A stretch of 63,466 nucleotides of DNA, filler included, from Syncephalis fuscata S228 (taxonomy: Eukaryota > Fungi > Zoopagomycota): the NCBI GenBank assembly GCA_025786725.1. It is 6 parts of 6 records of this genome, joined end to end, with 100 filler letters (N's around TTAATTAATTAA, not from the genome) between each part and the next. Parts side by side here need not be neighbours in the genome. Positions count along the whole stretch, not along the records: positions 13,583 to 32,977 come from JAHLTZ010000175.1; 5 more parts are not named here. One strand, given 5' to 3'. The translations under genes were made by a program, and so were the position numbers. The notes below the pieces were generated by a model. That model was not told where the DNA came from and searched no databases. It saw nothing but the letters and a program-made list of their open reading frames with translations. Positions 818 to 33,077 of the stretch are shown piece after piece (positions within the stretch are counted from its first letter, which is position 1; each line of letters starts with the position of its first letter).

Positions 818-2108
818 CTAATTAGTATATGAAGGAGGAGGACTTAATTTTCCCGAGCGAGACGGAGAAGCTGGTCTTCCAGAGCGAGGAGGAGGACTTG
901 ATCTTTCAGGTTGAGAGGGTGGAGGAGTATAGTTTGGTGGCCTTTTCTTTTGAACTTTATTAAAGTTTGGTGGGTCTACCTGTGGTAGATTATGCGCCAA
1001 GAGGTCAAATCTCTGGCCTGAGACTGTATTACGTCGTAAAGCAGCCCGCTCGGCCAAAAATGGATTATTGTTAATGTTTTTAATTATTTCGGCATCTGTA
1101 ATATCCAAAGCTAGTTGAATAGGCTTAGAACGGTCGGGGGCTGAACCTTCAGGAAGGTTATCGTTAATCATTACATTTAGATTGGCCGTCATAATGTTTT
1201 TTTGAGATTTAAAAATTTGTGTAAAGCTTTCAAGTATTTCTTCAACATCCTTCTTCGGATAATCTAATGCGTTCATTGGTAATGCTTCTTCAAAATCTCG
1301 CAGCATAACCTTAGGCAAGCCACGCTCGTCGGTGTTAATACAAATATCTAAAACAAAGAGTTAAATTATAAGCCTATAAAATTATAAATCTACTTGCCTT
1401 GTAGCTGCATTGTATTGTAAAACCAGCCTAATCTACGCAAATATTGCAAGGCTGTGTTTCGTTAGTTACAAATTAAATATCAATAGTATACTAATTACCG
1501 CTGAAAAACTGCCGCACAATTATAGGTTGCTTAATAATGAAATCAGCGTCCTTAAAATGATGTTGGCTAAAATTGGTAGGCGTTGTCTTGCATTGATTTT
1601 TTACCAAATAGCAATGCTTTTTGAAAATAGGAAAATCATACATAGGCTGCTCAACAAATTCACTACCTACGGGCGAAATACTTTTCATAGATCTAGCTTG
1701 CACTAAATTCTATAATATCAAAGTTATTATCAATATTACTTTAGTAGCAAATATTGCACTTGCTTTATAGACTAAAACTCGACGGTTTTCCGGATTAATG
1801 ACGTTGTTATCACCGCAAATAATGCGAACGCTCGTTGATTTATATGTTCCAATTGCGTAGTCTACTCCATGTCTAGACGGCAATACATGGGTAATAGTAA
1901 AGCCATCGATGCCAAATGTATTGGACAAGCCAGTCCGCTAGTTAAGAAAAAGTTCTAGACTAACTGTTAGAAGCATTCAAAATTTATACACTGACATACC
2001 ACCATTGCCTCCAAACAAACCAAACGTGGCTTGTACATCTTGCACTGCAGTAAGCAAACAAATGGCCGATACTACTTTGGCAAAGTCAAAATTACTATCA
2101 AATAGCAT
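818..2108 (-). pseudogene. Secreted protein-kinase-like (pseudokinase) gene, 5 exons, with an in-frame TAG in exon 2
   Basis: Signal-peptide-like exon 1 MLFDSNFDFAKVVSAICLLTAVQDVQA. Spliced exons give ALQYLRRLGWFYNTMQLQDICINTDERGLPKVMLRDFEEA, a degenerate match to kinase subdomains VIa-VII, followed by a Pro/Ser-rich tail. GC-AG introns at 1710-1763 and 1348-1397. TAG at 1938-1940 is in frame with the phase-1 splice. Confidence 0.6.
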
Positions 2109-2338
2109 GGTCAAAAGAAATCAAAAGTTATATGGTTAAAATGGTAGTTAAAGCGTTATGAATGGTTATTGTATGTCGTTTAAAAATTACTATCACTTAA
2201 ATTCGCATCTATTTATACAAACTAGATTGGTGTACTATTAGTATGCTTTAATAAAGAAAGTCACGGGTACTGTACGCTATTAAGGCAAAGTTCCTTAAAG
2301 GTGATACACGAAGAAGCTTAACATCAACGTCAAAATAA

Positions 2339-2435
2339 TTAACTTACATCCATAGTTTCAGAAAGTTTAGTATTGGTATCAAGATAACTAACTTGCATCC
2401 GTAGTTTCATAAAGGTTGGCATTAACATTGGAGTA
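2339..2435. repeat. Two-copy ~49 bp tandem duplication
   Basis: taacttacatccatagtttcagaaagtttagtatt followed by taacttgcatccgtagtttcataaaggttggcatt. Confidence 0.7.
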
Positions 2436-2945
2436 GCCAATAAGTTTGTAGATTTATTTTTAGTTAAAACTATCTGCTTTTAAATTCAGTCATTGGTTGT
2501 CTGTCTACTAACTTTGATAACGCACGCGGTGTAAATGACTATGTTTAGAAAAGTGTATCGTATGCGGAGCATACGTGATTTCATACGTTGCTTTAAGCTG
2601 AAATGGGCGATAATGTACTTTTGTTGATCACAAATACGTTGCAACGCCAGATGGTTATAATACCTATTATTGTGCTTTATGTTTTATATCGTTCTATTTC
2701 TCTAACAAGCTATTTTTAGTTATTTCATTGCACGAACTAAGTTTTATTGATTATTAATAAATGGCAATATCTATTTATTTTATAAATAGATTAGTTTACA
2801 GTTAACTATCAACGGATAGAAATGTAGCAGTGCTACAAATGGTTCTAAATTAAAATTATTAATAAAATATTTATTTAAAACATAATGTACAAATTATTGG
2901 AATCGTTATTACATGAAATGATTAAATAGATACAAAATAGCAATA

Positions 2946-4216
2946 TTATGCTACTTCTATGCGAATGGAATCGCGCCGTCTTTCTCTTTGAAGTTTTGCG
3001 CTTTCAAGCCTCCACCAGTGCAAGATAATCTTTCCACCTACTATGGGCCACAAAATTGTAAGTACTGCTAGTGCAAACATTTTACTTGCCACAGGATTCA
3101 TAATAATCCAAGGCATGGCGTTGCCCCAAGATAAAGCAGTGAATGTAGAAATAAAAAATGAAAAAATTATATGTTGTGCTGTTCTGCGAAGTTGAATTAT
3201 TGCGGTAATACGCTCTTTTGTTTCCTCGTCCGCGATAGACATTACGGTTTTAATATTTCGTTTTGCACTAGTAAATGGGTTGGATAGTAGTCTATTTGAA
3301 GATTGAACAGCCATCATCACTGATCTAACATTGGAAAATGTATCTGTTGTTTCTCTACCATTTTCAGCCGCTGTAGACGTCGCATAGCTATTGCAATCGA
3401 CGTGCGATGAAGCAATGCCTACAGCCGCAGCAGGCTTTTGTTCCTGGATAGGGGCAGTTTTTGAATTGTTCGATGCTCCTAACGATGACTCGAGTTTCTC
3501 CACAGTATCATTTAGCAGTTTGGTTAGAGTAATTGCATAGTAAGTGTAAAAATAGCGATTGATAGCATTGCCACGCCCCAGGTACACCAGGCAATTTGCG
3601 TGTAGTTTAGGTAATCGTGCCAATTTGAATCTTCTCCACGCACACCAGCCATATAGCCAAATATTGGTAGTATTAGTGTCATAATTACGCCTATTGTACT
3701 GAAAAAGCCGATTACCAGCTTGCGACGTGGTACTTGGATCGGAATCTTACTCATACGTTTTGTATGGCGATTAGGCGTCCATTCAAGAGTTCTATACACT
3801 ATTTCTATAACACCGAATGAAAATACCAGTATACTCCAAAAGCCGGATAGTATAGAAAGAAGAAGTGTAAGTGTTCGTATTTTAAACGATGGTACAACAT
3901 CGAAAGCACATAGCGTATTATGGGTCAATCGTGCCAGTAAGAATAAAATGGCAAATACAGTCGATACATCCAATGGACTCTGAATAAATTTGTGCTTTTG
4001 ATTTTGATGAGTGGTCGTTTGCTCGTTTAGCGTATTGTTTGCACGTCGTTTAATGTAACAGTAAACCAATGAGAATATACCAAATGTAACGAATAATGCA
4101 TGAATACCAGCACCAACGGCATAAAAAATAAAATAAACAGCAGCACCTTCACAATCAGTCATATTTATGGTGAAATCGCAATAAGGCGCGTATGGGGAGG
4201 CTGGATCACTCTTCAT
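2946..4216 (-). CDS. 7TM (GPCR-like) membrane protein, paralog of 4656-5921, split by a 1-nt deletion
   Basis: Starts MKSDPASPYAPYCDF like the paralog MKFDHPPPYAPYCDY. ORFs 3524-4450 and 2946-3623 join if one base is added to the A5 run at 3548-3552 (IAIF-YTYYAITL vs paralog GILYAYYAVVL). Confidence 0.75.
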
Positions 4217-13582: not shown

Positions 13583-13878
13583 GACCAGCGAGTCGACAAC
13601 AACAACAACAACGACTGATGTAAAACCACCACACCGAGGTCGTTCCCGTCAACAGTCACAGCAACAAACGGCCAATTCACGTGAACGAGTCGCCGTAATT
13701 TAGATGTTATTTTCCTTTTGTTTATCATTTTTCTTGTTTGCTAGTCGCCTGAATATTATGCCCGTTTATTTGCCTATTTGTTTCACATGTGAATTGTTGC
13801 ACAATTTGATTAAAACAATGGTCGTTAAATGTATTATCATTGTAATAATTATACTACTAATAGTTACTAAATGAAAGG

Positions 13879-15477
13879 TTAATTCAGTTCAGGTATAAAA
13901 CTTGTAATGAGTGCTGTCTCCTTATTCAGCAATAGCATGTGGCCCAATGCAAATGTACGATGTTTTACCATTACTATTGCATATGGATAAACGTCCACGT
14001 TGCCTGTTACAGCATCGATAACACAATAATGGCCAACTCTATAATTGTAACCAATGATTTTTGTATCAATAAGATGTTGAAAGTAACACAGCCTAACCGT
14101 TAAGATTTTTAAATGGATTTCATGCAAAATCTCTCCATTTAATAGTGACATAACAACTAGCGATGAGCAATTGAGCGACCAGAACACAACCAAATTCTGT
14201 GCTGAAATTAAAATCAGTTTTTCAAAATCATTTGTTGGATAGTTGCATTCAAAGACGACTCCTTTGTTTAATGAGACTACTCGAATGTAGCGTTGATAAT
14301 TATCTATATTGACATTCGATGTCCCCTCGGGTAAGTGAGCGTTGCAGTGAACTAATATGCGATCGCGGTCAATTGAATAAAATTCTGAAACCCAGAGTTT
14401 TGTAAGATTGGAGACAGTTATGTAATCTGATGCAATTGTAGCCATTCGCATCGTATCATCTCCAATTATCTCCAAATTTGTATCAGGTATCAATTGTATG
14501 CGGATTATCTTATAATCGAGTCTGAACTCGCTTTTGCAGTATTGTACAAAAATTGTCTTATTATTACTCGTCGAATGTATCCTATACTTATAGGAGTAGT
14601 CGATATTTGGAAAAATAATGGATGGAGGTTCGTGCAATTGTGTTGTTGAACCAATGTTATAGATTAGTCGAGTATAGTAAGTGGATTGTAAAGTGTTGGA
14701 TGGAGCAATCCTCTGTGAGCTGGAAACCAACAAAGATGCGCCTATAATTCTACCGTCCCATTTACCATTAATATCGATAGAGTGTAGTAGTTGGCAACTA
14801 TTTGCGTCCCATACTTGAAGCACATCAAAGAGCCCTTCAAAGTATTCTAAACATACAATTACACGCATGCCTTCATCAATGGCATCTACTTGTTGTTGGC
14901 ATTGATAAAATGCTATATTTTTAATAAATTTTAAACGGTTTTCATCCAATTTTAGTAGATGATTTTTGGCTATATTATTTGTCGAAAGTTTAATCAAATC
15001 AACAGAAGGATTATATCGATTTGCTATTGCAATCCATCCAGGATAGCTCACAGTCATCGTGCTACGGCCAATACCTAACTTTAGTAATTTATCTACCGTA
15101 GTAGATTTTATATAGAATGTAGATGTTGGCTTGTTATTCTGCCAATTTAAACCCATACTGGCACGTTGTCTATATCGCTGAAACCAAGTAACCTTTGATG
15201 TAGCTCTATTCTCCATGTCGGTTGCTGCTTCAGTTATTCTTGGTTCTTGCTTCAATTGCCATTGTAACCAGTCGATATCAGTATCGATATCACGAGGGAA
15301 ATGCTGTTGATACATTCTGCGCCAAAGATTATCGCAACCGATAATAGAATTGTACAATAATTTACAAGTGCGCGCCAATGCTACTGTGGCACTTAATTCG
15401 CTAAATTGTGATATATAATGAACTATATCAATAACTAGCCATATTCTTGGCAGTATGTCGTTATTCTGTGTGGACAT
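13879..15477 (-). CDS. Intronless F-box-like protein with beta-rich C-terminal region
   Basis: LPRIWLVIDIVHYI...VALARTCKLLYNSII...LWRRMYQQHF is F-box-like; WFQRYRQR...NW is shared with the 46157-47262 protein; first ATG at 15477. Confidence 0.7.
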   Translation of the reverse strand: MSTQNNDILPRIWLVIDIVHYISQFSELSATVALARTCKLLYNSIIGCDNLWRRMYQQHFPRDIDTDIDWLQWQLKQEPRITEAATDMENRATSKVTWFQRYRQRASMGLNWQNNKPTSTFYIKSTTVDKLLKLGIGRSTMTVSYPGWIAIANRYNPSVDLIKLSTNNIAKNHLLKLDENRLKFIKNIAFYQCQQQVDAIDEGMRVIVCLEYFEGLFDVLQVWDANSCQLLHSIDINGKWDGRIIGASLLVSSSQRIAPSNTLQSTYYTRLIYNIGSTTQLHEPPSIIFPNIDYSYKYRIHSTSNNKTIFVQYCKSEFRLDYKIIRIQLIPDTNLEIIGDDTMRMATIASDYITVSNLTKLWVSEFYSIDRDRILVHCNAHLPEGTSNVNIDNYQRYIRVVSLNKGVVFECNYPTNDFEKLILISAQNLVVFWSLNCSSLVVMSLLNGEILHEIHLKILTVRLCYFQHLIDTKIIGYNYRVGHYCVIDAVTGNVDVYPYAIVMVKHRTFALGHMLLLNKETALITSFIPELN

Positions 15478-15766
15478 GATGGAAATAGAAACAAGTATGA
15501 AAATTGTTTGGTTGTAGTAAAAAACCCCCTGAATTAAATAGAATGACGTATCGATCAGTAGATAGAACATGACTAAATATTTTAGTTCTAACAATTACTT
15601 TTTGTAAAATAATTAAACGTTTATATTGTTATCGATTAATCATTCCACAGATAATACAATTGACGATGTATTAAAGGTATTATATTATTGCAAAGTGCAC
15701 CTAATCTTTCGCTTTATTACTCTTTTTGCGACAAATAATCAGCAGCTTATTTTATTGCCGCTTCAC

Positions 15767-17099
15767 CTATTGTTGCACAGCCTTGGCTGTGTAGAGACGT
15801 GTAATATTGGCACCGCTTGTCGTTTCCAATTGTTTGGCATGCGCGTTCATTTGATGCGCTGTTAGCATTTGTTCAAAACGAGATGGTTCCGGCAACACTT
15901 TTGGTAGATCCTCAGGTTCTTCAGGCAACAATGCCATACCAGCCGCGGCACGCTCTTTGTTTTCTGCTTTGCGTTTCTGCACTGCTTGTTGAATACGCTG
16001 TAAGTCGCGTTGAGCACCACGTAACCAGTAGAGCCATTGCCCTTGTTCGTGACGCCAGTCATCAATACCTTCCGTCAACGACTCTACCGAGTGTTCAATA
16101 TGGCCACCATCAGCTAGTTCTAGTCGGCTTAAATCCGACTCTATTGGACGCTCTGTAGTATCCAGTTCATCCAACAATACTTCAGCCAATGTCGAGTTGC
16201 ACACCTTAACGGGTAGTTCATCAAAAATCTCCTGAGAGTTAATGTTCAATTTGCGCATACTATCGAGTAAATAGTTGTAAGCAAATCATATAAAAATAAG
16301 CCACATCAACCATCACTTACTTGGCGGTAGTAAAGTCGCGTGTACGGAATGCTCGCATGAAGTTCTTGCTTAAACGATAGGCACGAATGTTGAAATTGCC
16401 ATTATCCGTTTTTGAAACATCTACCAATTAATTACTCATTAATTAACTGCTTACATCTATTGTTCTGATATCACTCAACATATCCAATATTATACATACC
16501 ATGAATAAGCACAACACATTTCTCGCCCAACTTCTTCTGGTAATCAAACTGTGTCTCGATCAATGACTGAGTAATAAACGAGCCATAACGAGCCGATTGG
16601 TACCAGCCTACAGTATTATGATCGGCATTGACATCGCGTAATGAGCGCAACATATCCATTTGATATTGTGTGACTATAAAATAAATTGGAATCAGCCATT
16701 TGTTCAGTACAGTCAACCAACTGTTCTACGTACTGCTACTGCCATCGTCATGCTTGCCCGATTGAGGAAGTGGGAAGCAGTTGGTGATTTCAAGACAACC
16801 ATCGACATCCAAACCAAGTAGCTGACCCGTCGCTGTGCCGTTATGGCGTTCACGGCAGTGTTTGATGATCTTCATCACAACCTATAGCGTTTAGATCTAA
16901 ACGTCAGCTGGTATATACTAAAATATCTTGTATTATAATCATCTAAAGGCTTATTTAAAGCCGCTTATACTTGCTTGTATTTATTGTTATAACTTACCAT
17001 ACCATCCAATTGAACACTTTCCAATACAACCTGAGCATCTTGCTCGAGGTGTTCGGGCTTCATACTTGAAGGATCGGCAAGTTCGCTTTTCTTCACCAT
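15767..17099 (-). CDS. EIF3H: Translation initiation factor eIF3 subunit H, 5 exons
   Basis: [65 protein letters not shown]. Confidence 0.9.
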
Positions 17100-17296
17100 A
17101 TTGCTATTGTTAATACGATTAACCGTGCAGTACCAATCAACAACAACAATAATAATAAACGGTCAAAGCCAAAATGCAAAGAGGTGGAGAAGGAAAAAGC
17201 TGATTAAAAAAATGGCAGTTTTCAATGTTGCAAGCTTCGTTAATTCAATCTTCATTAATTCTATATTCCTCACATTGACGGTAAACATTGTTATCT

Positions 17297-18699
17297 ATGA
17301 CGGTGTTCAAGCTATTTGGTATGTCGTTATAAGGATAAATAACAACCTATTAGGATAGGAAAATAGCTATACTAATAATATTATACGTAGATATTGGTGC
17401 CAACCTGGTAGACCCTATGTTTCGGGGTATTTATCGTGGTAGACGGGTACATGCAGGTAATGACATACACTATATATTAATACTAGCTATTAGAACTTAA
17501 TAAAACAACGATAGATGATTTTAAACTGGTATTACAACGTGCAAAGGATGCTGGCGTCAATCAAATGCTGATAACCGGCGGTTCTTTGAATGAATCAATA
17601 GAAGCATTGGAGTTGGCACGCGAAGAAGGTAATTAAACAGTATGAACAGTTAAACTATCCTATAATAATAGCAATATTTAATTCTAGATGGACTCTATAG
17701 TACGGTGGGCTGTCACCCAACACGTTGTAAGGAATTTGAAAAGTATAAAGAGGGATCAGATGCATATCTTGCAGCACTTTTAAAGTTGGCCGAACAAGGT
17801 AAAACAGAAGGCAAAGCACTAGCCATTGGTGAATGTGGACTTGATTATGACCGATTACACTTCTGTCCCAAGGATGTTCAGTTAAAGTGAGATTGATAGA
17901 TTAATAAATAATAATAATGACTACTTATTAAATGGTATAGATATTTTGAATGGCAATTTGATCTGGCAGAAAAGACGCAGTTGCCAATGTTTTTGCATAT
18001 GCGTGCTGCTTCTACTGATTTTATAGATATCCTTTACTGATACTTATAATGAGTTGTTTATCACTACAAGTGTATTCTTAATTGAAATGATATACAGCTT
18101 ATTAAGCGACATCGAAGCCGTTTTACTGAAGGTGTTGTCCATTCATTTACGGGTACAATGGAGGAAATGGAAGCATGTGTAGAACAAGAATTATTTATTG
18201 GACTTAATGGATGGTATGTAAATATTAAATACAGATTGTAAACACAAATACTAAATAATATTTTATGTAGTTCATTAAAAACAGAAGATAATTTGACAGT
18301 GGTTGCCGCTGTACCAGAGGACCGCATTATGCTTGAAACGGGCAAGTCACATCATTGATGGTCAATGAAGTTTTTTAATTAGTAAATAATAGATGCACCA
18401 TGGTGTGAGACTCGGTCAACTCATGCGGGACATCGATATCTTGCTGGACTTACATGGCCAGAAGCAAAGAAGAAAGAAAGATTTGAAATGGGATATTTAG
18501 TGAAATCGCGTAATGAGCCTAATGCTATGCGGTAAGTTAATAATAAGTATAATCATGGTAATTATTAATTAATGGTAATTATAGTCAAGTATTACGTATT
18601 GTGGCCAGTGTACGCAATGTATCTGAAGAACATTTGGCAGAAGTGGTCTATCGTAATACATGTCGTGTATTTAAACCATCCACTGATGCAGATCATTAA
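17297..18699 (+). CDS. TATDN1: TatD-family DNase (TATDN1-like), 9 exons
   Basis: [63 protein letters not shown]; one AT-AC and one GC-AG intron. Confidence 0.93.
18027..18095 (+). other. U12-type AT-AC spliceosomal intron
   Basis: 5' ATATCCTTT, branch-like TTCTTAAT at 18075-18082, 3' TATAC; removal gives [23 protein letters not shown]. Confidence 0.9.
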
Positions 18700-18910
18700 T
18701 CTGTCGCATATTAATAAATACTTGTTGATGGATATAAATGTCGGTAAATATCGGGATAGATATAATGAAATCTCAGACTAAAAGCGTCAATTTTCTTTTT
18801 TTTCTTGTTACTTTCTTCGTCTTCGTTCCTTACGCACAATAAGACTTGGTAAGTATGCTGTAATGTTGGTATTGTGAGATGTGAATACTTATTATATGAA
18901 TCTAAAGAAC

Positions 18911-19928
18911 ATGTCGCCGCCACCGTCTGGTAAACAACGCGAAAGCGGCACTGCCCGTTTATTGGGCTCTGGCACGTCAGGCATTCTAGAGCTGCTTATT
19001 TTCCATCCAGTAGACACGCTCGCCAAACGACTAATGTCTAATCAAACTAAAGTAAGCTAAAGCAGATAGTTTAAACAGTAACTTATATAGTTATATAGCT
19101 TTTCGGTGCTGGCGGTAGCGGCATGGCAGGTCTTAATAAAGTTATCTTTAAGGTAAGTTAAAATGGCTGTAATAACACGTAGTTGTATTAATTATAATTT
19201 AATAGGATGCAGCTGCACTTCCAATGACCCAACGTTATTTCTCACTTTTCCCCGGTCTTGGATTTGCTGCAGGATATAAGATCTCGCAGCGTATCTATAA
19301 ATTTGGCGGTCAACCTTATGTCAGCGACTACTTGGCCACCCATTACGGTAATGAATTCCGTAGTACATTTGGTGAACGTAACGGTAAAACAATGATGCAC
19401 GCCACGGCCGGTAGTATCATTGGTATTGGTGAAGTATTATTGTTGCCATTGGACGTGTTGAAGATTAAGCGTCAAACAAATCCTGAAGCATTCCGTGGAC
19501 GAAGCACCTTTAGAATCTTTGCCGATGAAGGATTCGGTCTATATCGTGGTGGTATGTGGACGGCAGCGCGTAATGCACCCGGTAGTTTCTCGTTGTTTGG
19601 TGGTTCGGCATTTGTTAAAGAGTATGTATTTGGACTGGAGGATTTCTCCAAGGCAACGTTCTTCCAAAACTTTTGTGCATCTATTGGTGGTGCTGTAGCA
19701 TCGATCACCGTGTCGGCACCACTTGATGTTGTTAAAACACGTATCCAAAATCGTAATTTTGATTCGCCTGAAAGCGGTATGAAGATTGTGCGAGATATGA
19801 TTCGAAAGGAAGGTATGGGCGCCTTTTTCAAGGGTCTTGTGCCAAAGGTGTTGGTCGTAGGACCTAAATTAATATTTAGTTTCACCATAGCGCAGGCGCT
19901 CATACCATTTTATGGCAAATATGTCTAA
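18911..19928 (+). CDS. GGC1: Mitochondrial GTP/GDP carrier, 3 exons
   Basis: ARLLGSGTSGILELLIFHPVDTLAKRLMSN, YKISQRIYKFGGQP, PLDVLKIKRQ, PLDVVKTRIQ. Confidence 0.92.
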
Positions 19929-20743
19929 ACAAATAAATAAATGATTGCTTGGTATTTTGTTATGGATATTAGGATTAAGTGATGATATATACTTACAGAA
20001 TGATGAATAATAGCATGATTGTAATATATTTATTATTATAAAATTGAATAGGTTGGAGAAAGAAGTAGCTGTTTACTCGTATGTTGTTTCAATAAAAATG
20101 TATCTGGTATATCAAATTACGTATTCAATTATTGTATTAATATTTATTTTAGTAATGTTATTTTTAAATTACTGCTTCTAAACTTTGCAATAATTCTGCC
20201 GTACACTAACTTATAGCCAAAGAGATGATAGTAATGTCATAAATTGTAGTAAAAGTATATCATTTATATTAATAAAGATGTGCTATATTGAAAAAAATTA
20301 AAGTTAGTTTACATCTTTGGCTTTAGTTGTAAATTAATGATTTGTCTAATACATTTTATTATATTTTAATATCAACTAGCGACTTGTAAATCAATATACC
20401 TAAATAATCAATAATAGTACTAGATTGTATGTTAGTTATTGTTATTACTATGATATTAAATAGAATGTCCGACAACATCAACGTTTTTCAATCCCACTAT
20501 TATATCGATAATATAGTCAGAGTATCAATAAATTGAACATAACGTGACGATAGCCGTGCCTTGTTGCTTCCAATCCAAATGGATAAGAAACTAGCATAAT
20601 TATTCTAGCATAGGGTACTTCAGCGGTTCGTTCACGGGTAAAAAACGATGCTGTACACACAAACTATGCAGATGATGCAGATAAATAGCGTATCTACTTA
20701 CCAATAAATACAGATAAATAAACAAACATCGATTAAAGTTAAA

Positions 20744-20780
20744 TGGATGAATGAATGAATAGATGGATGGATGGATGGAT
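20744..20780. repeat. (TGGA/TGAA)n microsatellite; another (GGAT)n at 34912-34941
   Basis: Directly visible tetranucleotide runs. Confidence 0.8.
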
Positions 20781-20980
20781 AAATAAAGGTAATGTACAAA
20801 AGTATAATGTTTGTGATGTTTGTATAAAATTGAATAATCACAGATCTAGTAGGCACAGTTTACCAGTCATTTTGCACTTGTCATATTTTACAGTCTAGTA
20901 ATTAACACATTCATGCATTATTTGATAGTCAATAAAATATAATGAGGCCATTTAATTTATAGTATATATATGATACTTTA

Positions 20981-21571
20981 TTATCGCAGACATGTACCAT
21001 TTTTTGCATGTCCATAATCATTAAATTTTGGATCAAGCATTCGATCAATCAAAAATATTGCATTGTTATTAGAACGAATGTATTTAGTGATTCTTGCACA
21101 ATTTACATATGTAAAGCCATTCTTTACATGAAGACAAAGTGGCTTATCCGCATAGCTATAAACATCATAGCATCCAGTTGAAGGTGGAGTTTTAGGAAGA
21201 CGATCACGAGAGGACATATAATGTGCTGCTTGTTCACCGGTTAAACTGCCATAAAAAGATGTTTTTTCTGGTATAAAGCTGACACTATCATGAGTATTTA
21301 GTGGATAAGAGATAGGGGAAGTAGATTTGACCGCGTTCTTAACGGTATAAAAAAAAAGGTCAGTACCATAATGTGTGGTTGCTCCTATTGCTACTCCTAA
21401 AGAAAAACTATCATACATCCATGAATCTAGAAAAACTGAACTGTCTCGTTTTAAAAGAGATTGCTTTGCATCGTATGTTTCAGTAGCACTATTTCCATGA
21501 ATATACTCAGTAGGAACAGCTATCACTACTGATGCCAAAGCAAGTGCAATAAGTATAATGCAAAATAGCAT
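20981..21571 (-). CDS. Secreted fasciclin (FAS1)-like protein, 196 aa
   Basis: Signal peptide, KR site; SVSFIPEKTSF resembles the FAS1 H1 motif and SNNNAIFLIDRML the H2 motif. Confidence 0.6.
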   Translation of the reverse strand: MLFCIILIALALASVVIAVPTEYIHGNSATETYDAKQSLLKRDSSVFLDSWMYDSFSLGVAIGATTHYGTDLFFYTVKNAVKSTSPISYPLNTHDSVSFIPEKTSFYGSLTGEQAAHYMSSRDRLPKTPPSTGCYDVYSYADKPLCLHVKNGFTYVNCARITKYIRSNNNAIFLIDRMLDPKFNDYGHAKNGTCLR

Positions 21572-21859
21572 GCTTGAAATGATGGAGTGCTATCACAATA
21601 AATGCTATGCTTGATATAAACAGAATGCAGTTGATGATGGATAGTATAGAAATGCAGATAATGCTTGAAAATACAGAAATGCTAAACAAGAAGGATGCAA
21701 TGAAATAAATGCAAAGTGAAGAGTATATTGCCGACTTTGTATCATTTATTTGTAGCTTTATACAAAGGATTGCACTCAATAATAACTGCCCAACTATTGG
21801 TCAAAGTCCATATTAAGATTGGCAAAATACGTCATTGCCTATTTATTGTGCCTTTGCTC

Positions 21860-24800
21860 CTTTGATTGTTGCTATTCAAATAAACATTAAATATACTTTT
21901 TACATTAGTTTATAGCACTAACTGTATATTTATGCAGTTACTTATAAACAGTCTAGCAGATGGTTTTAATCTACAGCTATTTAGTCGAAAGGCTAAGATA
22001 GTTTCATCATGCGATATATTGTTGAACATTATACTTGTGTAACCATCAGGCTGAATGTAAATCACATGCTTCATCATCCATTTACAGACCTTCTTTGTTC
22101 TCGTATGCACACTTGCAAAATACGTGAACTGTAACATGCGGTACAACCACATGAACATGAGTTGTTGCCATTCCCAGCAGGGTAGACCTTGAATACCACA
22201 TGAACACAAATAACATTTATTAGTGCAGTATAGCATGATGTATTCATTCAATCTGTTACTCATTCTATTACTTTGTATTTGCGCCCAACACTCGTACTAT
22301 TTGTAACTTTGTTTACTGGAGCTAGCAGGTCTGCTCTAATCTGCCATAATCAATCCATATCACCAACTATTTAACTTACTTTTTAAGCAACATGCGTTTC
22401 CTAAATGCTTCACATGAACCAACTTCACTTGTAATATCGCGTTTCCTATTTTTAGTTATAGGAATTGCTGCATTAGCATTTTTTACTGCTAATCAATTGA
22501 GTTATGTAATTGAATCAGAGGATATTTATCAAACTGAGTATCATACTGAACCACTTACTGTACCAACTATACTATTTCGAACAATAGTAGCGCCTGATTT
22601 AGTTATTCTCTATAATGTTACGATTGACGGAATTTCATATGTGTCATATAAGGAAAGCGATGTAATTGATTTTATTAATTGGAGTGAAAATGTGATTGAT
22701 TCAAGTTATCCAATTCAAGATTGGCGGCTATCGTATGACATTTATAGGTCTCGTTCACTAAACAACTCAGTACTTTCTATGTTTATGTTAAAGCCTAATA
22801 TTAATGCTACATTTGTTCCTAATGTTCGAAAAACTCTTAACAGACCTGATATACGCAAACGTCCCATTAAGGAAATTAATCTAAATTTTACAATGAAATT
22901 TCCAGATAATAAAAAGCTTGCTAGGCAAGCTCGTAATTATCAAACTGATATTTTTTTTATCAGTAATCCTGCTTTAATTAATCCAAAAAACTTTAGTGAA
23001 CTATTTGATCTGGCAACAATCGATTCCGGGTCTCGTTTTACTGTAAAAAGTGGGTCCAAAACCAAGATTGACTTTATTCAAAGCTATAAAGAAGGAAAAG
23101 ATCAAAATGAAACCATTTACGATTTCAAGTTTTATGAACAGCGGGGAACAGATCCAACAGTAGTCGAGTTTACCCTTGTTCCTCGCAACAAGCCATCTAA
23201 CAAGAAATATGGATTTATAGTAAAGAAAGAGATTGCACGACGTCCCGTTAGTTGGTTTCAAGCACTAGCATCAATTGGTGGTGCTATATCACTATTTATT
23301 GTTATTTTCACTATACTTTTTGGTCAACGCCGTCTCAAACCTTGGGGTATCATTCAAAGGTATTTTGTGCGCAACAAAATGCTTAGCCTTTTACCACAGT
23401 CTATGGTCAGCATTAAATCACATTATGATCCCGGATTTAATCAAGAATCGGTTACCGACATGACATTTCTACATATGCCAAATCCAGAACAACGTGGCAC
23501 AGCATCCTGGTTGCCAAAAACTATTCATAATCCAAATCAACACAAGTCATCGAGCAATGATGTATCTCGGTGTATACCATCTATATTAATTAATAACGAA
23601 CAACAAAACTTATCTGCCATTCATCCTCGTGCTGATGAAATCCATGAGCTTAAGGCAATGATGACAGCGCAGAAAGCACAAATGCAAGAGCAGAAAGTAC
23701 AAATGAAGGCACAAATGGAGGCACAAATGGAAGCGCAGACTGTATTTCAACTGAAGCAACTTACAATAATGTCAAATCGACTTGCGACACTTGAAGACGA
23801 TACAAGTACAAGCAACAGCAATATACTGCTAGATAAACCGACCCCAAATAGCACATGTCTACCGAATACTTCAATGGCCCACCATAGTAAATCGTTTGCA
23901 TCTACATCAAGTGTATTGCCGCTCGAAGCTCGGGTATCAAACCTTGAATCTTTTCAGCACCGATTGGGAACATTTTATTTGTCATCTGATTTGTTTAAAG
24001 ATACTTCGTTCAGTTAATATTTACAATAAATTATATGATTATATGTACCGTAATAGCTATGTATTCAGAGCAAAAAAACTATGTTTCATTATTAAAATCA
24101 TAAGCATTGATTGCTATATATATTATACTATTACTATTTGATGGCGATGTAGTTACTAGACAGTAATATTACTAAACTTATATAAACATTGTTACAAATC
24201 TGATTTAAAAATTGCAATTTAGATGACCATACAGCGTTTTATTTCTTTGTCATTTTATAAAGCTAGTCTTCAATGTGCGTTAATACTTATCTCAACACTC
24301 AGAATACAATTTGTTGGTTGACTGAAATTGATTTACTAATAAACTTATTTTTTGGACATTAGTTATCACAGTTCAACTATAATAAACCGAGTTGCTTGTA
24401 TAGCACTAATAAGAAAATAAATAAAAATAAAACTAGTAGTATATAATAAACAAAGCTAACAATATAAATAAATGCTTTGTAATATTTTCTCATTAACTCA
24501 AAACACATCAAATAATAGCCAATTAATTTCAAAGCAATCAAAAAATGCTGTATTCGAATGTTTATAATATTGTTTATGATTTATTTAAAAAAAATATGTA
24601 ACGCGCATAGATATTGAACGCAACAAGATGAATAACAATTATTTTGCAATGATTGTATGTATTATAGCCAACTGCTGCATTATTTTCTAGATGTCACAAT
24701 ATCTGTATTACTATGCTAATTACAAAAGGAATGGCATATGGTGGAATTGATACAGAGAGACCGTCACATGAAAGTAATCTAAAAGCTATGCTAGTCATAT

Positions 24801-25577
24801 GAAGGCTTGAGCTTTTAGTATTGGCATTAAATAAATTTTAATCAAAATAAAGACAATGTGCAAGAAAGTGTGTTGTCAATGATGTCTATAGAAATTAATT
24901 ACTGAAATGTAGTGTGCATGCTTTACCTGTCATTGTAACTTTGCCACTTTGATTGTTGCTATTCAAATAAACATTAAATATACTTGTTACTTTAATTTAC
25001 ATCACTAACTGTATATTTGTGCAGTTACTTATAAACAGTCTAGCAGATGGTTTTAATCTACAGCCATTTAATCGAAAGGCTAAGATAGTTTCATCATGCG
25101 ATATATTGTTGAACATTATACTTGTGTAACCATCAGGTTGAATGTAAATCACATGCTTCATCATCCATTTACAGACCTTCTTTGTTCTCGTATGTACACT
25201 TGCAAAATACGTGAGTTGTAACATGCGGTACAACCACATGAACATGAGTTGTTGCCATTCCCAGCAGGGTAGACCTTGAATACCACATGAACACAAATAA
25301 CATTTATTAGTGCAGTATAGCATGATGTATTCATTCAATCTGTTACTCATTCTATTACTTTGTATTTGCGCCCAACACTCGTACTATTTGTAACTTTGTT
25401 TACTGGAGCTAGCAGGTCTGCTCTAATCCGTCATAGTCAATCCATATCACCAACTATTTAACTTACTTTTTAAGCAACATGCATTTCCTAAATCCCCTGC
25501 ATGAACCAACTTCACTTGTAATATCGCGTTTTTTATTTTTAGTAATAGGAATTGCTGCATTAGCATTTTTTATTATT
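21860..25577 (+). repeat. Tandem segmental duplication: 21860-22490 vs 24947-25577 (offset 3087 bp)
   Basis: About 530 bp upstream plus the first ~100 coding bp are nearly identical, with no net indel. Confidence 0.9.
22392..24017 (+). CDS. Intronless 2TM protein with large extracellular loop, 541 aa
   Basis: TM1 near the N-terminus, N-glycosylation-site-rich loop, TM2 SIGGAISLFIVIFTILFG, PWGIIQRY, coiled-coil-like C-terminal tail. Confidence 0.8.
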   Translation: MRFLNASHEPTSLVISRFLFLVIGIAALAFFTANQLSYVIESEDIYQTEYHTEPLTVPTILFRTIVAPDLVILYNVTIDGISYVSYKESDVIDFINWSENVIDSSYPIQDWRLSYDIYRSRSLNNSVLSMFMLKPNINATFVPNVRKTLNRPDIRKRPIKEINLNFTMKFPDNKKLARQARNYQTDIFFISNPALINPKNFSELFDLATIDSGSRFTVKSGSKTKIDFIQSYKEGKDQNETIYDFKFYEQRGTDPTVVEFTLVPRNKPSNKKYGFIVKKEIARRPVSWFQALASIGGAISLFIVIFTILFGQRRLKPWGIIQRYFVRNKMLSLLPQSMVSIKSHYDPGFNQESVTDMTFLHMPNPEQRGTASWLPKTIHNPNQHKSSSNDVSRCIPSILINNEQQNLSAIHPRADEIHELKAMMTAQKAQMQEQKVQMKAQMEAQMEAQTVFQLKQLTIMSNRLATLEDDTSTSNSNILLDKPTPNSTCLPNTSMAHHSKSFASTSSVLPLEARVSNLESFQHRLGTFYLSSDLFKDTSFS

Positions 25578-27020
25578 AATCAAATTATCGACGTACTTCG
25601 ACTGAAGGAGATTTATCAAATTGAGTATGATGTTGAGCCACTTGCTGTACCATCTATATTATTTCGAACAATACTAACACCTAATTCAGCTATTCTATAT
25701 ACTGTTACGATTGACAGAACTAAATATTGGATACGTAGAGAAAGTAATTTGACTGATGTTATGAACTGGGGAGAAAATGTAACTGACTCAAGTTACCCAA
25801 TTCAAGATTGGCAATTATCCGATGAGTATTATAGGTCTCGTTCACTAAACAATTCAAAGCTTTCTATGATTATGTTAAAACCCAATATTAGTGCTGTATT
25901 TGTTCCTAAGGCCCATAATTCTTTAAATAGACTTCACAAGGATAAACGCCCTACTAATGAAATTAATATAAAAGTTATAATTGACTTTCCAGATAATCAA
26001 TCGTTCGCTACTAAGCAATCTCGTAGTTTTCAAACTGATATATTTATAATTAATAATCCCGATTTACTTAACTCACCAAATCACAAGAAACCATTCGATC
26101 TAGATACGATTAATCCTGATAATCGCTTTACTGCAAAAAGTGGAACCAATAATAAGTTTAATTTTCTCAAAACCTATAAAGAAGAAAATAAGCAGACTAA
26201 ACCAATTTACGATTTTAAGTTTCATGAACGACCAGGCGTAGATCCAGCAGCAATTGAACTCAACATTGTTCCTCGCAATGAACCATCTGAAGATAACAGT
26301 GGTTTTATAGTAAAAAAAGAAATTGCACGACATCCCGTTAGTTGGTTCCAAGCAGTTGGTGCTATTGGTGGTGCTATATCACTATTTATTGCTATTTTCA
26401 CCTTATTTTTTGGTCAAAGTCGTCTCCGGCCATGGGGAATCATTCAACGATACATTATGCGCAACAAGATGCTTAGCCTTTTACCACAGTCTATGGTCAG
26501 CATTAAATCATATTACAATCCCGAATTTAATCACGGACCAGCTGCTGATATGAAGGGTTTAAATAAGACAAACCCAGAACCATACAAGACAGCATTCCGG
26601 TCATCAAAGTCTACTGTCAACACATATCGACAAGATCCGCCAAATAATGACATATCTCAACGTATACCATCCATACTTATTAATGGCGAGCAGCCATACT
26701 CATCCACTGCTGATGCTCATGCCAGTGAAATAAGTAAGCTCAAGACAATGATAGCAGCACAAATGAAGCAAGCTACAGTAATGTCAGATCAGCTTGCAAT
26801 GCTTGAAAGTAATCTAAGCACAAACAACAGTGCTATACTGCTAGATAAATCGACCCTGGATAATACATGTCTATCAAATACATCAATGGCTCAGTATAGT
26901 GAACCATTTGTATCTTCACGTAGTGCAGCAGCATTTGAGACTCGCTTATCAAATATCGAAGCTTTCCAGTCTCGATTGGGAACATTCTACTTGTCATCTG
27001 ATCTGTTTAAAGATGATTAG
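25479..27020 (+). CDS. Paralogous 2TM protein, 513 aa
   Basis: Collinear similarity to 22392-24017 over its full length. Confidence 0.8.
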   Translation: MHFLNPLHEPTSLVISRFLFLVIGIAALAFFIINQIIDVLRLKEIYQIEYDVEPLAVPSILFRTILTPNSAILYTVTIDRTKYWIRRESNLTDVMNWGENVTDSSYPIQDWQLSDEYYRSRSLNNSKLSMIMLKPNISAVFVPKAHNSLNRLHKDKRPTNEINIKVIIDFPDNQSFATKQSRSFQTDIFIINNPDLLNSPNHKKPFDLDTINPDNRFTAKSGTNNKFNFLKTYKEENKQTKPIYDFKFHERPGVDPAAIELNIVPRNEPSEDNSGFIVKKEIARHPVSWFQAVGAIGGAISLFIAIFTLFFGQSRLRPWGIIQRYIMRNKMLSLLPQSMVSIKSYYNPEFNHGPAADMKGLNKTNPEPYKTAFRSSKSTVNTYRQDPPNNDISQRIPSILINGEQPYSSTADAHASEISKLKTMIAAQMKQATVMSDQLAMLESNLSTNNSAILLDKSTLDNTCLSNTSMAQYSEPFVSSRSAAAFETRLSNIEAFQSRLGTFYLSSDLFKDD

Positions 27021-27265
27021 TCTAATTAATATCTATAATAACTTATATAATTATATTTGCCATAATAAATGTGTATTCACAAATCAAAAAATAATATATA
27101 AACTGAACATGTATCCAATTAATTACATTCTATTACCAATATTTATTAACGACTTGGAATTGAATAAAACAATTGGTACTTTAACATATCAACACATTGA
27201 ATAAACGAAAATGTAATGCTTTGTTAGGAATAGCTAAAACAATACAGTAAAATAAAACTAATAGC

Positions 27266-29978
27266 TTAATCTCCATCGGATATATCAAGTTCCGCCGTCA
27301 TATACTGAAACGCTAATTCTTGTACAGCACCATAGCTGTTGTGTCGACGTATACCCTGTTCTATTGTTCGTCTATCGATCATACTACGATGAGGTCGTTG
27401 TCCGTTAGGAGAACCTACGGTAGAGTAGGATTGGTCGTTTCGTTGTGGTAAATCGCGTCGTGTGGCATCGAAACGGCGCAAGCGTAGTCGGTAGATGATC
27501 TCATCGATCGTCAATTCAATCTGACAATGGTTACGTATAATGGCAATTTCTATAGTAATTTACAGTTAAGATATCAATCGTATGTACAAATAGCGTATTA
27601 GTGTAAAATTCTATGTATAAAAAGGATACTGGGCCAAGTGGCACGTTCACCGCGTAGCATCGACTCTGTCATCATTTCATCTGATGGATTAACCAGTAAG
27701 TGAGGAAATTGAGACCAGGCGATATCTGGAATAATGGTAATATCTCCTTCGTATCGTTGAGATAGAATAGCTCGTAATTTACAAGTGGTATTTGGCATAA
27801 CACCTAAATCATCCAACTAACAACTCAATGGTATTTAGTAATATATAATATATAATATAGAGTGTGTATAGTTTACCTGTGCTAAACGATGTTGCAATTC
27901 CTGAACCGCTAAATTCATCATCCAAGAACCCGCCCGATGTAAAGGTGACTCCGAAATAGACTTGCGTAAAAATGGAATAACATGTGGATTGACTATAAAT
28001 ATTGTAAGAAATAGACTAATCTACGGTACTCCTATCTATTCTATTCTTACCTTGACAAACAATAAAGTGATTTATATTGAACAGTTCAGATAGCTTGTTC
28101 ATCGGTAAATCACTAATAAAATCATAGTTAATTAATAATATATATTAAATTATTCAATTAAATACCTACGTTTCTACTGAACCATCAATCCAACGATGGC
28201 CTAAATATACTCGTGTCAACATAACTGCTATTAGTGTCAATTAAACATACCAGCCATATTCCACGGGACAATCTTGCCTGTCTGGTCCTTTACCATAAGT
28301 CGAGTGGATTGAAACACTAAGGGAACTGCACACGATGCCATACTATTCGTTCATTACATATTTACATGTATAATATTAGTATATATACTAGCTATAACTA
28401 TCCCAACTTACACAGCAGACCAAATGACTACATTGGGCGTAGTAAGATAGTTCAGCAATTGTGGCATTTCATGATTTGTCGATGAACTAACGGCAATATT
28501 AAGAATACGACGGGTTCTATTAAATGCTTCCTATTATTAAATAACATTATAACTTAGCCGTTACTACTGCTAATACTAGTCCATGATTACAATACCTGAA
28601 ATGTCAAATCACCTAGAATGTTATATAATGATGTCTTCATAGTAGATTTATCATAAAAATTCCCTACTCATATTCCATAAATATCTAAATATATTATAAA
28701 CAGTATTGCTTATACTTACCATGCTTAAGGAATCGAGATATTTTATCATAGATACCATCATCGCTAAATGAATCAAAGAATTTCTAATAATGACATTATT
28801 AACAATCCTACTATTATAGTCATCAAATCTATTACTTACAAGCTCTACTGCTCCTGGTTGTAAAAGTTGATCTACTTCTTCATCAGTATGTGTACAAATA
28901 ATGGATGCAATAATAGAACCACTTGATGTACCAGATATAACTCGTGGCAATAAATTACACTCCTTTAAACAACGAATAACACCTATATGTGTTAGGCCTA
29001 TATTCATCATACCACTCATTAATATATATATATATATATATAGATATCATCATCCTCTACTTATATAAAGACTTACCAAATGTTGCTCCACCACTTAATA
29101 ATAAAGCCGTACGACCATAAGCATGTCGAACATTAATGAAAAAGTCGTATCGTGCATCCTCAGATGTCCATTCATCGTAATCGACATCAGAAAGAAAGTT
29201 CAACTGTAAAACTACTTCCTCAATAAATTCTTCAATAAGCTTCTTCGTACCAATACGTGTATGTGCATAGTTCTAATCAATGACATCATCATTATTAAAT
29301 AGTTATTAATAATAAGCCATTTAACTTACCCGTGGATTACCCATATCAGCAAAATGACGTGATAATGACGATCGAAGTAAGAATATCATAGCTGATATAT
29401 TATTTGATTCTCTGGCAGCCCGTAACTGCTCAATACGTAACTTCAATATTCCATAGTCATAGTCGGAAGAGACAGGATTTTGTTTCCACGTATTTTTACC
29501 TATTATTATAATAAACATGTTAGATCGTTCTATCAACAACAACTATATATTACCATCTTGTTGATCAAGTATCAATGCAGCTGATGCCCATTGTTCGTAA
29601 TTGGTGGCTACACTCATCAAATGCTCGTAATAATCCCTTCTATCATGTGGATTTAATATAGCAAAATACTTTTCCTAATTATTATAATACACAATTAATT
29701 AATTAAAATGTTAATTAATTAACCAACTAACTATTAGCTACCTTTAACCATTGTGCAGACTGATAACCAATTTCATGTCTTTTATCTAATAACTGATATA
29801 GCCACCCAGTCTTAGATTTATCTTCAGCGGTGAATTCTTTAGGTTCTTCAATAAAATCCTCAACTGAAGAAGTCTTTGTTGTTTGTGTTGTTTCCGAGTC
29901 CGAGTCTTCCAGTAGCTCATCTTCAAACGCCATCCAAACAGGACGATCGGTGTGGTTGAGCACTGGAGGAGGAGACAT
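27266..29978 (-). CDS. Patatin-like triacylglycerol lipase (Tgl4/Tgl5/SDP1 family), ~13 exons
   Basis: [65 protein letters not shown]. Confidence 0.9.
27550..27629 (-). other. U12-type GT-AG spliceosomal intron
   Basis: 5' GTATCCTTT, branch ATCTTAAC (27565-27572) ~15 nt before AG; removal gives [19 protein letters not shown]. Confidence 0.88.
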
Positions 29979-30235
29979 ATAAACGAGAGCAGCTATAGCA
30001 GTAGGTAGTTTGGTATCAGTATTTAGTAGTTATAAACGAATTGACTGTAAAAGTAGAGTAGATGACAAGGTAAGTGGCGGAATTGAATGAAAGTAAAAGT
30101 GTTGTTCAGTCGGAGAATGGCAGTCTCCACAAAAACAACAATGTTTATTGGTACTTTCTATTTTAGTCTAGTTTATTGATTTGCCTTCCTACTCTTGTTT
30201 TTAGTTGCATATACAGGTATCAGTTATTGGTTGAA

Positions 30236-32200
30236 ATGCATGCAAGTAGTATTAGCCATGATGCATGAATCTATATGTATATACGATTAACAGTATATTT
30301 AAATATAGATTGCTATAGAGGGATGTGGACACGGTGACCTCGATGCTATTTACGCCGAGATTCAGCGGCGCGAAGAGGCACAGGGCTGCCGTGTTGACTT
30401 GCTGCTTATATGCGGTGATTTCCAGGTAAGTACTACGCTTAACACGATAGTAGCTAATAGTATTTAGGCGGTGCGTAACTTTGAAGACTTGGCAACTATG
30501 GCTTGTCCTGTAAGATTCCGTAAATTGGGCGATTTTCACCGTTATTATTCTGGTGAAAAGGTGGCACCTATTTTAACACTATTTATTGGTGGCAATCACG
30601 AAGCGAGTAATCACTTACAAGAACTGTAAGTTATTAATGGTTTAAAAAGATTTACTAATAAGTCTAGATATTATGGTGGATGGGTCTGTCCCAATATCTA
30701 CTATTTAGGTGCAGCAGGAGTTGTTCAATACGGTGGATTGCGTATTGGTGGTATTAGCGGTATTTACAAGTCTCATGACTATACTAAAGGTAGCGCTGTT
30801 TAATAGCGATTATGACTATAGATATACTAATAGGAATACAGGTCGTTTTGAAGAACCTCCATACAACAAGAGTGATGAACGAAGTATCTATCATATTCGT
30901 AGTTATGATATTGAACGATTATCAATGGTAGATACCAAGTGTAATAGCAATGATACATTATATTGATGTACACACTGGTTAATAGATAAGAGAACGACTT
31001 CATGTAATTATGTCTCATGATTGGCCGTGTGGTATTGAACAATACGGTAATTTGAATCGTCTTTTATCACAAAAACCATTTTTACGTAAAGATGTAAGTT
31101 TGTATTAAATCATTTATATTTATTAATTAATATGAGCGACTATTAGATATCTACTAAATCTTTGGGATCACCGAAGAGCATGGATTTATTGCATCGTGTT
31201 CAACCACTTTATTGGTTTGCTGCTCATCTTCATGCTTACTTTAAAGCAACAGTTCAACATCCAGTTACCGCAGTTGAAACAGTTGACAAGCAACAAGAAC
31301 TACTTAATATTGGTAATCCAGAAGCTATTTCACTAGGCGATCTAGACGATGATAGTAGTGGTAATGATGACAAGGACGATGGTATTCAATTTGAAGGAGC
31401 ACCTCAAGTTGATGTACTTGCTGTTGTTGAACAGAATCCAGATCAAATAGCTTTAGATATAAGCGAAGAAGAAGAAGAAGAAGAAGATGATGATGATGAA
31501 GAAGAGGATAGTAATAATGAACAGAATGAACAGAATGAAAGGTCAATTGGCGATATGTTTATAGATACAGTTGGTGTAAACGCATCAGTATTACCAAAAT
31601 TCACAGTAACCAATTTCCTAGCGTTAAGTAAACGACAATCTAAATTTGAATTTCTTGAGGTATGTTTATTAAATAATAGTAATAATAATAATAATAGTAA
31701 AATTGAATATATTGTTATATCTATAGATTATAGAAATTACTGATGAATTGAATGAAGCACCATCTACATTTTGTTATGATCTTGAATGGTTGGCTATTTT
31801 ACGGGCAACACGTCCCTATCTATCATTACGTTATCGCCAATCAAGTCTACCCTGTAATGATGCAATTTACCGGTAATATTATATACAATGATTGTATTTA
31901 CACTATTTATTAACTAGCAATACGAATAGTGAAATTGATAAGGAGCGTAAATGGATAGCAGCCAATGTCACTGATTTACAAATCCCACACAATTTTACGA
32001 TGACCGTACAGCCACCTACGCCTCAAGAAGCGAGTGGACCTACACGCACAAATGTAGAAACACCACGTAGGTTAACATGTTACTGACCCACTACCTACTA
32101 ATGACTATAATAACTATAATAACTATTAGGATTTACCCGCAATCCACAAACTACCAACTTTTGTCAAATGTTAGGTATTGCCGAACCAACTTGGCAATAA
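30236..32200 (+). CDS. DBR1: RNA lariat debranching enzyme, ~10 exons
   Basis: [66 protein letters not shown]; first intron GC-AG (30242-30308). Confidence 0.93.
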
Positions 32201-32355
32201 ATAATAAATAACATTACAATGGCTATTAATGATATAATAGAATGTCAATCTGTATTTATTCTTATACTATAACAATGTATAGAGGGGGTAATTGTAATAG
32301 TAGTCGTTGATGATTCAGTAGTGGCTATTACCATTAGATAACGAGACTTAGTGAA

Positions 32356-32731
32356 TTAGAAACGATCGCGTGAATAGCTATAACAATAACAGAGGCAAGG
32401 GCAATCAATAATGCATGCATTAGTATGGTGTCACACACACTATTATAGCGGCATGTAGTACATGGTATATAGTACACGCACATATACATCCACGTGCATA
32501 CACCTACCTTTTGGCAAATTCTTGGTTAACGGCAAACATCTTGGTGTTTGTATCTTGCGTGACATGGAGCCATGGGTATGGGTTATTATGGCGATCCCAA
32601 ACGACTTCAGTACCGCGAGCTAGACGGGTTACATACCAGGCAGCACCACCCACGGCAACACCCAATACACCAACAATAGGCAATACTTCAACGCGATACC
32701 AGTTTTTCATAAAGCTTTGACGGAACGACAT
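32356..32731 (-). CDS. NDUFA4/B12D-like small mitochondrial protein, 2 coding exons
   Basis: EVLPIVGVLGVAVGGAAWYVTRLARGTEVVWDRHNNPYPW. Confidence 0.8.
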
Positions 32732-33077
32732 ATTGGATAGCTGTAAAATGGATGCGATAGATAATAGATGAGACGAGACAAGTAAGTAGAAATGGTAAGT
32801 AACGTTAAAGGTAATAAATAATATCGATAGTACGTTAGATGAGTATATATATATATTCTTAATACTATCGGAGATAAGTAACACCAATATCGCCTACTTA
32901 CTGAAACTATGAGATTTACCCAAACAATAAAAGTGAGTGAACTATTGTTGTAATAGAAGAAAGATACCGAGTGGTGGNNNNNNNNNNNNNNNNNNNNNNN
33001 NNNNNNNNNNNNNNNNNNNNNTTAATTAATTAANNNNNNNNNNNNNNNNNNNNNNNNNNNNNNNNNNNNNNNNNNNN

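Follow-up and report, generated by a model that had tools for sequence, protein, structure and literature searches.

A U12-type GT-AG intron, probably ancestral, in a patatin lipase gene of Syncephalis fuscata, a fungus estimated to keep about 200 minor introns

The last intron of a lipase gene in Syncephalis fuscata S228 carries a donor unlike those of its neighbors, which raises the questions of whether it is a genuine U12-type (minor) intron, whether it was inherited or newly gained, and how common such introns are in this genome. The window, that is, the whole stretch of DNA analyzed (63,466 nucleotides, filler included), joins six pieces of the assembly. The lipase gene lies in the piece spanning positions 13583-32977 (contig C85), together with a TatD gene that contains a second minor intron. 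The features concerned are as follows.

27266..29978, minus strand: DUF3336 plus patatin lipase gene (Tgl4/Tgl5/SDP1-like), 14 exons, 634 aa, hand model
27630..27816, minus strand: exon 13, 187 nt, ending GERATWP, 100% identical to residues 479-540 of the public protein P0375
27550..27629, minus strand: U12-type (minor) intron of the GT-AG subtype, the last of the 13 in the lipase gene; length 80 nt, phase 1
27619..27629, minus strand: minor 5' splice site GTATCCTTTTT, with positions +5 to +11 complementary to the U11 5' end AAAAAGG
27565..27572, minus strand: branch site ATCTTAAC, followed by 15 nt to the intron end
27550..27552, minus strand: 3' splice site TAG, without a polypyrimidine tract
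27266..27549, minus strand: exon 14 (last), beginning (K)IAIIRNHC, with 92 of 93 aa identical to P0375
18027..18095, plus strand: U12-type intron of the AT-AC subtype, within the TatD gene (17297-18699); length 69 nt, phase 1

As read from its translation, the predicted lipase is of the Tgl4/Tgl5/SDP1-like kind, with DUF3336 (PF11815, E 5e-37) followed by a patatin domain (PF01734, E 1e-25) and with intact GxSxG and DG catalytic motifs (GTSSG at residue 264 and DGS at residue 414). Exons were joined only for the frame check, and homology searches were run exon by exon; searched one by one, the exons matched P0375, a protein derived from a second lipase copy on contig C279, at 99-100%. Exon 13 alone had no match in Pfam, and a word search with it returned one match. 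Several other genes were observed in the same piece. A lariat debranching enzyme (Dbr1-like) gene (30236-32200, plus strand) stands head to head with the lipase, and the gene order lipase, Dbr1, B12D is preserved in S. plumigaleata (L146). The product of a mitochondrial carrier gene is 100% identical to S. fuscata KAI9592365.1 (P0121) over the main exons. A tandem duplication on the plus strand (21845-27059, period ~3.1 kb) comprises two intronless genes (541 and 513 aa) for which Pfam returned no match, the upstream non-coding stretch of the units being 95% identical and the coding parts only 70-75%. Pfam also returned no match for two minus-strand genes, one intronless (13879-15477; 530 aa), whose start by eye resembles an F-box, and one of 196 aa (20981-21571) that probably encodes a signal peptide.

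Our splice-site scores, the reading frame, and conservation indicated that 27629-27550 on the minus strand is a real GT-AG U12-type intron, as the first-pass annotation had proposed. The log-odds of its 5' splice site for the minor over the major type was +14.4 bits, against +1.7 for the best of 201 major introns in a leave-one-out comparison, and its branch score exceeded that of every major intron (n = 201). The branch site differs from TCCTTAAC by one mismatch and places the branch A about 17 nt before the intron end, and the 15 nt that follow the motif agree with the spacing of about 15 nt claimed earlier. The other 12 introns of the gene carry ordinary donors, such as GTAAGT and GTATGT, so the remark that this donor stands apart was accurate. 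Among the acceptors compared, only the AG at 27550 preserves the frame and yields 634 aa; the neighboring acceptors (AC at 27555 and AG at 27521) lead to an immediate stop (541 aa), and retention of the intron leads to a stop at 550 aa. The resulting junction is that of P0375, which likewise has 634 aa, and is shared by the orthologs, bearing out the expectation that splicing would restore a conserved protein stretch, and this public annotation argues for the intron being spliced out. A small gene finder of our own, which reproduced 34 of the 35 introns drawn by hand (33 of these belonged to its training set), also labeled the intron minor, although this intron was absent from its intron training set. 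The donor 8-mer alone is insufficient, with 39 one-mismatch matches in the window versus 44 expected, and the call therefore depends on donor, branch site, frame, and conservation together. By these measures, the lipase intron is an ordinary, well-behaved minor intron.

The U12 assignment presupposed minor snRNAs, and these were found in the genome. U11 (47.5 bits; Rfam cut-off, 39) and U6atac (contig C315, 4451-4610; 37.8 bits; cut-off, 33) score above their cut-offs, and a full-length U12 candidate scores below its own (34.6 bits; cut-off, 53; E 2e-4), with a fold z-score of -4.5, a conserved branch-binding segment, and an Sm site. The 5' end of U11 complements positions +5 through +11 of the intron without a mismatch, and AGUAAG in the U12 candidate complements the branch site CUUA(A)CU with a bulged A. 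From this complementarity and the known pathway, U11 would base-pair to the 5' splice site, U12 would do the same at the branch site, and U6atac would then replace U11 at the 5' site for catalysis; in this manner, the minor spliceosome is predicted to remove the lipase intron. Compared with the Rfam models, both U11 (L001) and U12 contain long insertions in their stems. The U12 gene (L003:1501-1672) sits some 0.3 kb upstream of an AP mu-subunit gene in the opposite orientation, which itself contains a minor intron. A 25-position model of zf-U11-48K, searched exon by exon in this intron-rich genome, gave no match.

The same features could in principle belong to a major (U2) intron with a chance minor-like donor, or to a minor-like intron that is now spliced by the major machinery; the GT-AG ends would suit either case, the donor 8-mer is common in AT-rich DNA, and U4atac had no match at E<=1 in the genome. 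However, U4atac is also without high-confidence detection in other mucoromycete and zoopagomycete fungi (Olthof et al., PMC11347168), the other three minor snRNAs are present, dozens of AT-AC introns carry the same motifs, and none of the 201 major introns comes near the donor score of the lipase intron. In addition, both U12 motifs have been retained in Rhizophagus and in other Syncephalis while the intron body diverged. We therefore regard major splicing of this intron as very improbable and treat it as U12-type in what follows.

Whether the intron is ancestral or newly gained had been left to a comparison of homologs, and this came out for ancestry: the intron occurs at the same codon and in the same phase in all named fungal orthologs that were readable, and it is minor-type in Rhizophagus. 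Introns of S. plumigaleata (76 nt, CCTTAAC) and Rhizophagus diaphanus (79 nt, CTTTAAC) at this site and phase are both minor-type with a GTATCCTTT donor, and most other intron positions of the lipase are also common to R. diaphanus. Metagenome sequences likewise have minor-type introns with the GTATCCTTT donor here: one Syncephalis-like contig (L036; 77 nt), one Rhizophagus-like contig (L140), and a more distant Zoopagales-like set (L141-143), where the branch site is weaker. For Basidiobolus ranarum, a 580-aa form of the protein reads WP-KISII, and a 526-aa variant reads WP-SILF and ends soon after; the variant matches read-through of a GTATCCTTT donor, which points to a minor-type intron, and Basidiobolus thus probably shares it, judging from the protein.

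Major-type introns occupy the same site in Polychytrium (GTAAGT), Spizellomyces (GTAAGT), and Endogone (GTGAGT), and 22 fungal loci from soil metagenomes are also non-minor at this site, with the splice resolved in 15 of the 22. Three of these loci are Mortierella-like, and the rest form one group whose introns, where the splice is resolved, measure only 36-39 nt. This group includes L043, L055, L056, L065, L075, L077, L086, L093, L103, L107, L111, and L113, and some donors in it (GTATGATCCTTTT, GTAAAGATCC, and GTATTTTCC) resemble remnants of minor donors. The soil-metagenome scan returned only copies with an intron or with Ser/Asn at the site and is therefore uninformative on intron loss; a first metagenome scan gave no matches, and two intronless lipase homologs that surfaced are probably bacterial.

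According to PMC10639083, conversion is taken to proceed almost exclusively from minor to major introns, so the simplest reading of this distribution is an old minor intron with several conversions. Under this reading, the ancestor shared by Zoopagomycota and Mucoromycota would already have carried the intron in its minor form, and the lineages that are now major-type most likely became so through conversion. The position itself is older, reaching back to the chytrid split, but both chytrid outgroups are major-type, and the minor state is accordingly traced to the Zoopagomycota-Mucoromycota ancestor only. A gain of the minor intron specific to Syncephalis, or a Physarum-like conversion from major to minor, would accord with the major-type introns of both chytrids and several Mucoromycota. 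This account is the hardest of all to credit, given that the minor type is common to Rhizophagus and, as argued above, Basidiobolus and that conversion is taken to go almost exclusively the other way (PMC10639083); the Rhizophagus ortholog alone refutes most of it. A change from major to minor that happened once, on the stem leading to Zoopagomycota and Mucoromycota, is formally conceivable. Collectively, the orthologs indicate by their sequences that the lipase intron is old and not newly gained. Being minor-type in three fungal lineages and major-type in four or more others, this single site gives a concise example of what look like repeated conversions from minor to major.

The two minor introns had also been taken to suggest a minor-intron-rich genome, and 29.36 Mb in 371 contigs was searched. 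The donor followed by CTTAAY and AG/AC gave 156 rows versus 42 for the reversed pattern, and 17 of the first 20 distinct loci were AT-rich introns between open frames of recognizable genes. RTATCCTTT followed by YTTRAY gave 201 rows versus 30 in the reversed control at spacers of 18-48 and 125 versus 55 at spacers of 49-79; donor and branch signal are thus linked genome-wide, as the U12 proposal entailed. The excess of donors alone (814 versus 556 reversed) was dropped as a count, since a Y-start control ran in the opposite direction (688 versus 880) and Markov backgrounds spanned 660 to 780. A joint estimate gave 110-229 true RTATCCTTT sites, in agreement with about 165 obtained by sorting the listed rows by eye, and a median of 198 minor introns (range, 128-293). 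For the denominator, GGTAAGT, which marks 36 of 201 major donors, occurred 10,027 times against a background of about 1,800-3,500, giving an estimated median of 41,000 introns in total (range, 30,000-57,000). The resulting density of 0.48% (95% range, 0.28-0.80%) is a model estimate rather than an annotation-based count, and its ranges depend on priors that we set and on a 90-kb sample centered on minor introns; the model gave P(>1%) = 0.002, P(>0.554%) = 0.30, and P(>0.276%) = 0.98. Duplicate haplotype contigs inflate the absolute numbers, minor and total alike. By this estimate, the genome keeps about 200 minor introns, or about 0.5% of all its introns, which is high for a fungus.

The description of the genome as minor-intron-rich thus stands by fungal standards but not at the 1-2% suggested by the first-pass annotation, which had counted two U12 introns among roughly 125; both introns are real, but this denominator mixes unrelated pieces, and their own piece contains about 37. 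A density of 1-2% would fit these two of about 37, as well as four more minor introns that appeared unsought in fetched loci, three of them in genes already having one. Nevertheless, RTATCCTTT sites total only 814 genome-wide, most of them without a branch site, and the true sites are few against some 41,000 introns, so a density that high has very little probability. At the preferred density of about 0.5%, two minor introns in one window form a local cluster; the chance of two among 37 is about 0.015, which is to be expected somewhere when windows are selected for such features.

The short lengths (69-80 nt) noted for the two introns are correct but nothing special, as they are typical of the genome: minor introns have a median of 70 nt and are slightly longer than major ones (58 nt; p 9e-6), with the search pattern bounding the minor lengths. 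Minor introns lean away from phase 0 (6 of 23). Of the 23 minor introns in the checked set, 15 were AT-AC (Wilson 45-81%), and inspection of a longer list by eye gave about 50 of 94 (~53%); the human share is about 26%. We estimate that about half or more of the minor introns are AT-AC, about twice the human share, a side result that deserves a proper count. One intron with the GTATCCTTTTT donor (L008:2473; 69 nt) has no recognizable U12 branch site and is possibly a minor intron part-way through conversion. Other minor introns were seen at L004:1501, L003, L014, L017, and L020 and, two each, at L033, L008, and L011; by eye, the translated genes include a CDK5-like kinase, an XPG/Rad2-like protein, a DEAH helicase (Prp16-like), an aspartyl aminopeptidase-like protein, and an AP mu subunit. 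Human CDK5 and XPG presumably have their classic AT-AC introns at places similar to those of the Syncephalis minor introns, and mouse Cdk5 contains a U12 intron.

The AT-AC intron of the TatD gene, also proposed in the first pass, is conserved across three Syncephalis species: S. plumigaleata and S. pseudoplumigaleata retain its donor, a branch-like site, and its AC end, whereas its middle part has diverged, and the argument that the lipase and TatD introns support each other holds. The public TatD models of these two species (282 and 300 aa; L034:8244-9633 and L035:2037-3502) fall short of the 313 and 308 aa, respectively, that result when the AT-AC intron is used, and the 300-aa model is consistent with a GC-AG intron whose start is placed 22 nt farther upstream, hinting that annotation may misdraw AT-AC introns in the genus. 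Relative to C85, both minor introns repeat in opposite orientation on contig C279, with one base changed in each, and several further minor introns occur in duplicate; the C279 copy is probably the other haplotype, and parts of the assembly probably contain both. Overall, we hold with high confidence that the lipase intron is an ancestral U12-type intron that would be removed by the minor spliceosome, with the ancestry and conversions outlined above, in a genome of about 200 minor introns of which about half or more are AT-AC.

The lipase intron differs in no respect of kind from known U12-type GT-AG introns, which it resembles in its RTATCCTTT donor, its CTTAAC branch site 17 nt before the intron end, phase 1, the missing polypyrimidine tract, and the minor snRNAs in the genome; its 80 nt are short, as the introns of this genome generally are. 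Physarum polycephalum is alike only in having many minor introns for its group: its expansion lies mostly at novel positions and reaches several percent, whereas the Syncephalis intron appears ancestral, the density is far lower, and there is no sign of de novo gain. Blastocystis sp. subtype 1 (n = 253, 77% AT-AC; PMC10639083) is similar in its compact genome, short minor introns, and raised AT-AC share, but it has an inverted phase bias, in contrast to the usual bias in Syncephalis, and a median of 39 nt versus 70 nt. Among fungi, the same survey gives Rhizophagus irregularis 205 minor introns (0.272%), about half the density estimated for Syncephalis (P(>0.276%) = 0.98 under the model), and gives Basidiobolus meristosporus the published fungal high (0.554%, n = 249); PMC11347168 reports 237 (0.5%) for the latter. 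Basidiobolus belongs to the same phylum, Zoopagomycota, has a minor-intron number and density similar to our estimates, and probably has the lipase intron in common, but Syncephalis is a Zoopagales mycoparasite with a 29.4-Mb genome, and its density was estimated rather than counted from annotation. Syncephalis is unnamed in the text of PMC10639083, whose survey spans 3,107 NCBI, JGI, and Ensembl genomes, and in the text of PMC11347168; our literature search found nothing linking Syncephalis with minor introns or the minor spliceosome, although the species tables of the surveys may include it. It is conceivable, but rather unlikely, that the surveys missed the Syncephalis set since annotation misdraws AT-AC introns and that the "pronounced loss" described for Zoopagomycota needs revision. 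Zoopagales mycoparasites would, on our estimates, join the fungi with hundreds of minor introns, which contrasts with the low density and pronounced loss reconstructed for the Zoopagomycota ancestor by Larue and Roy (PMC10639083).
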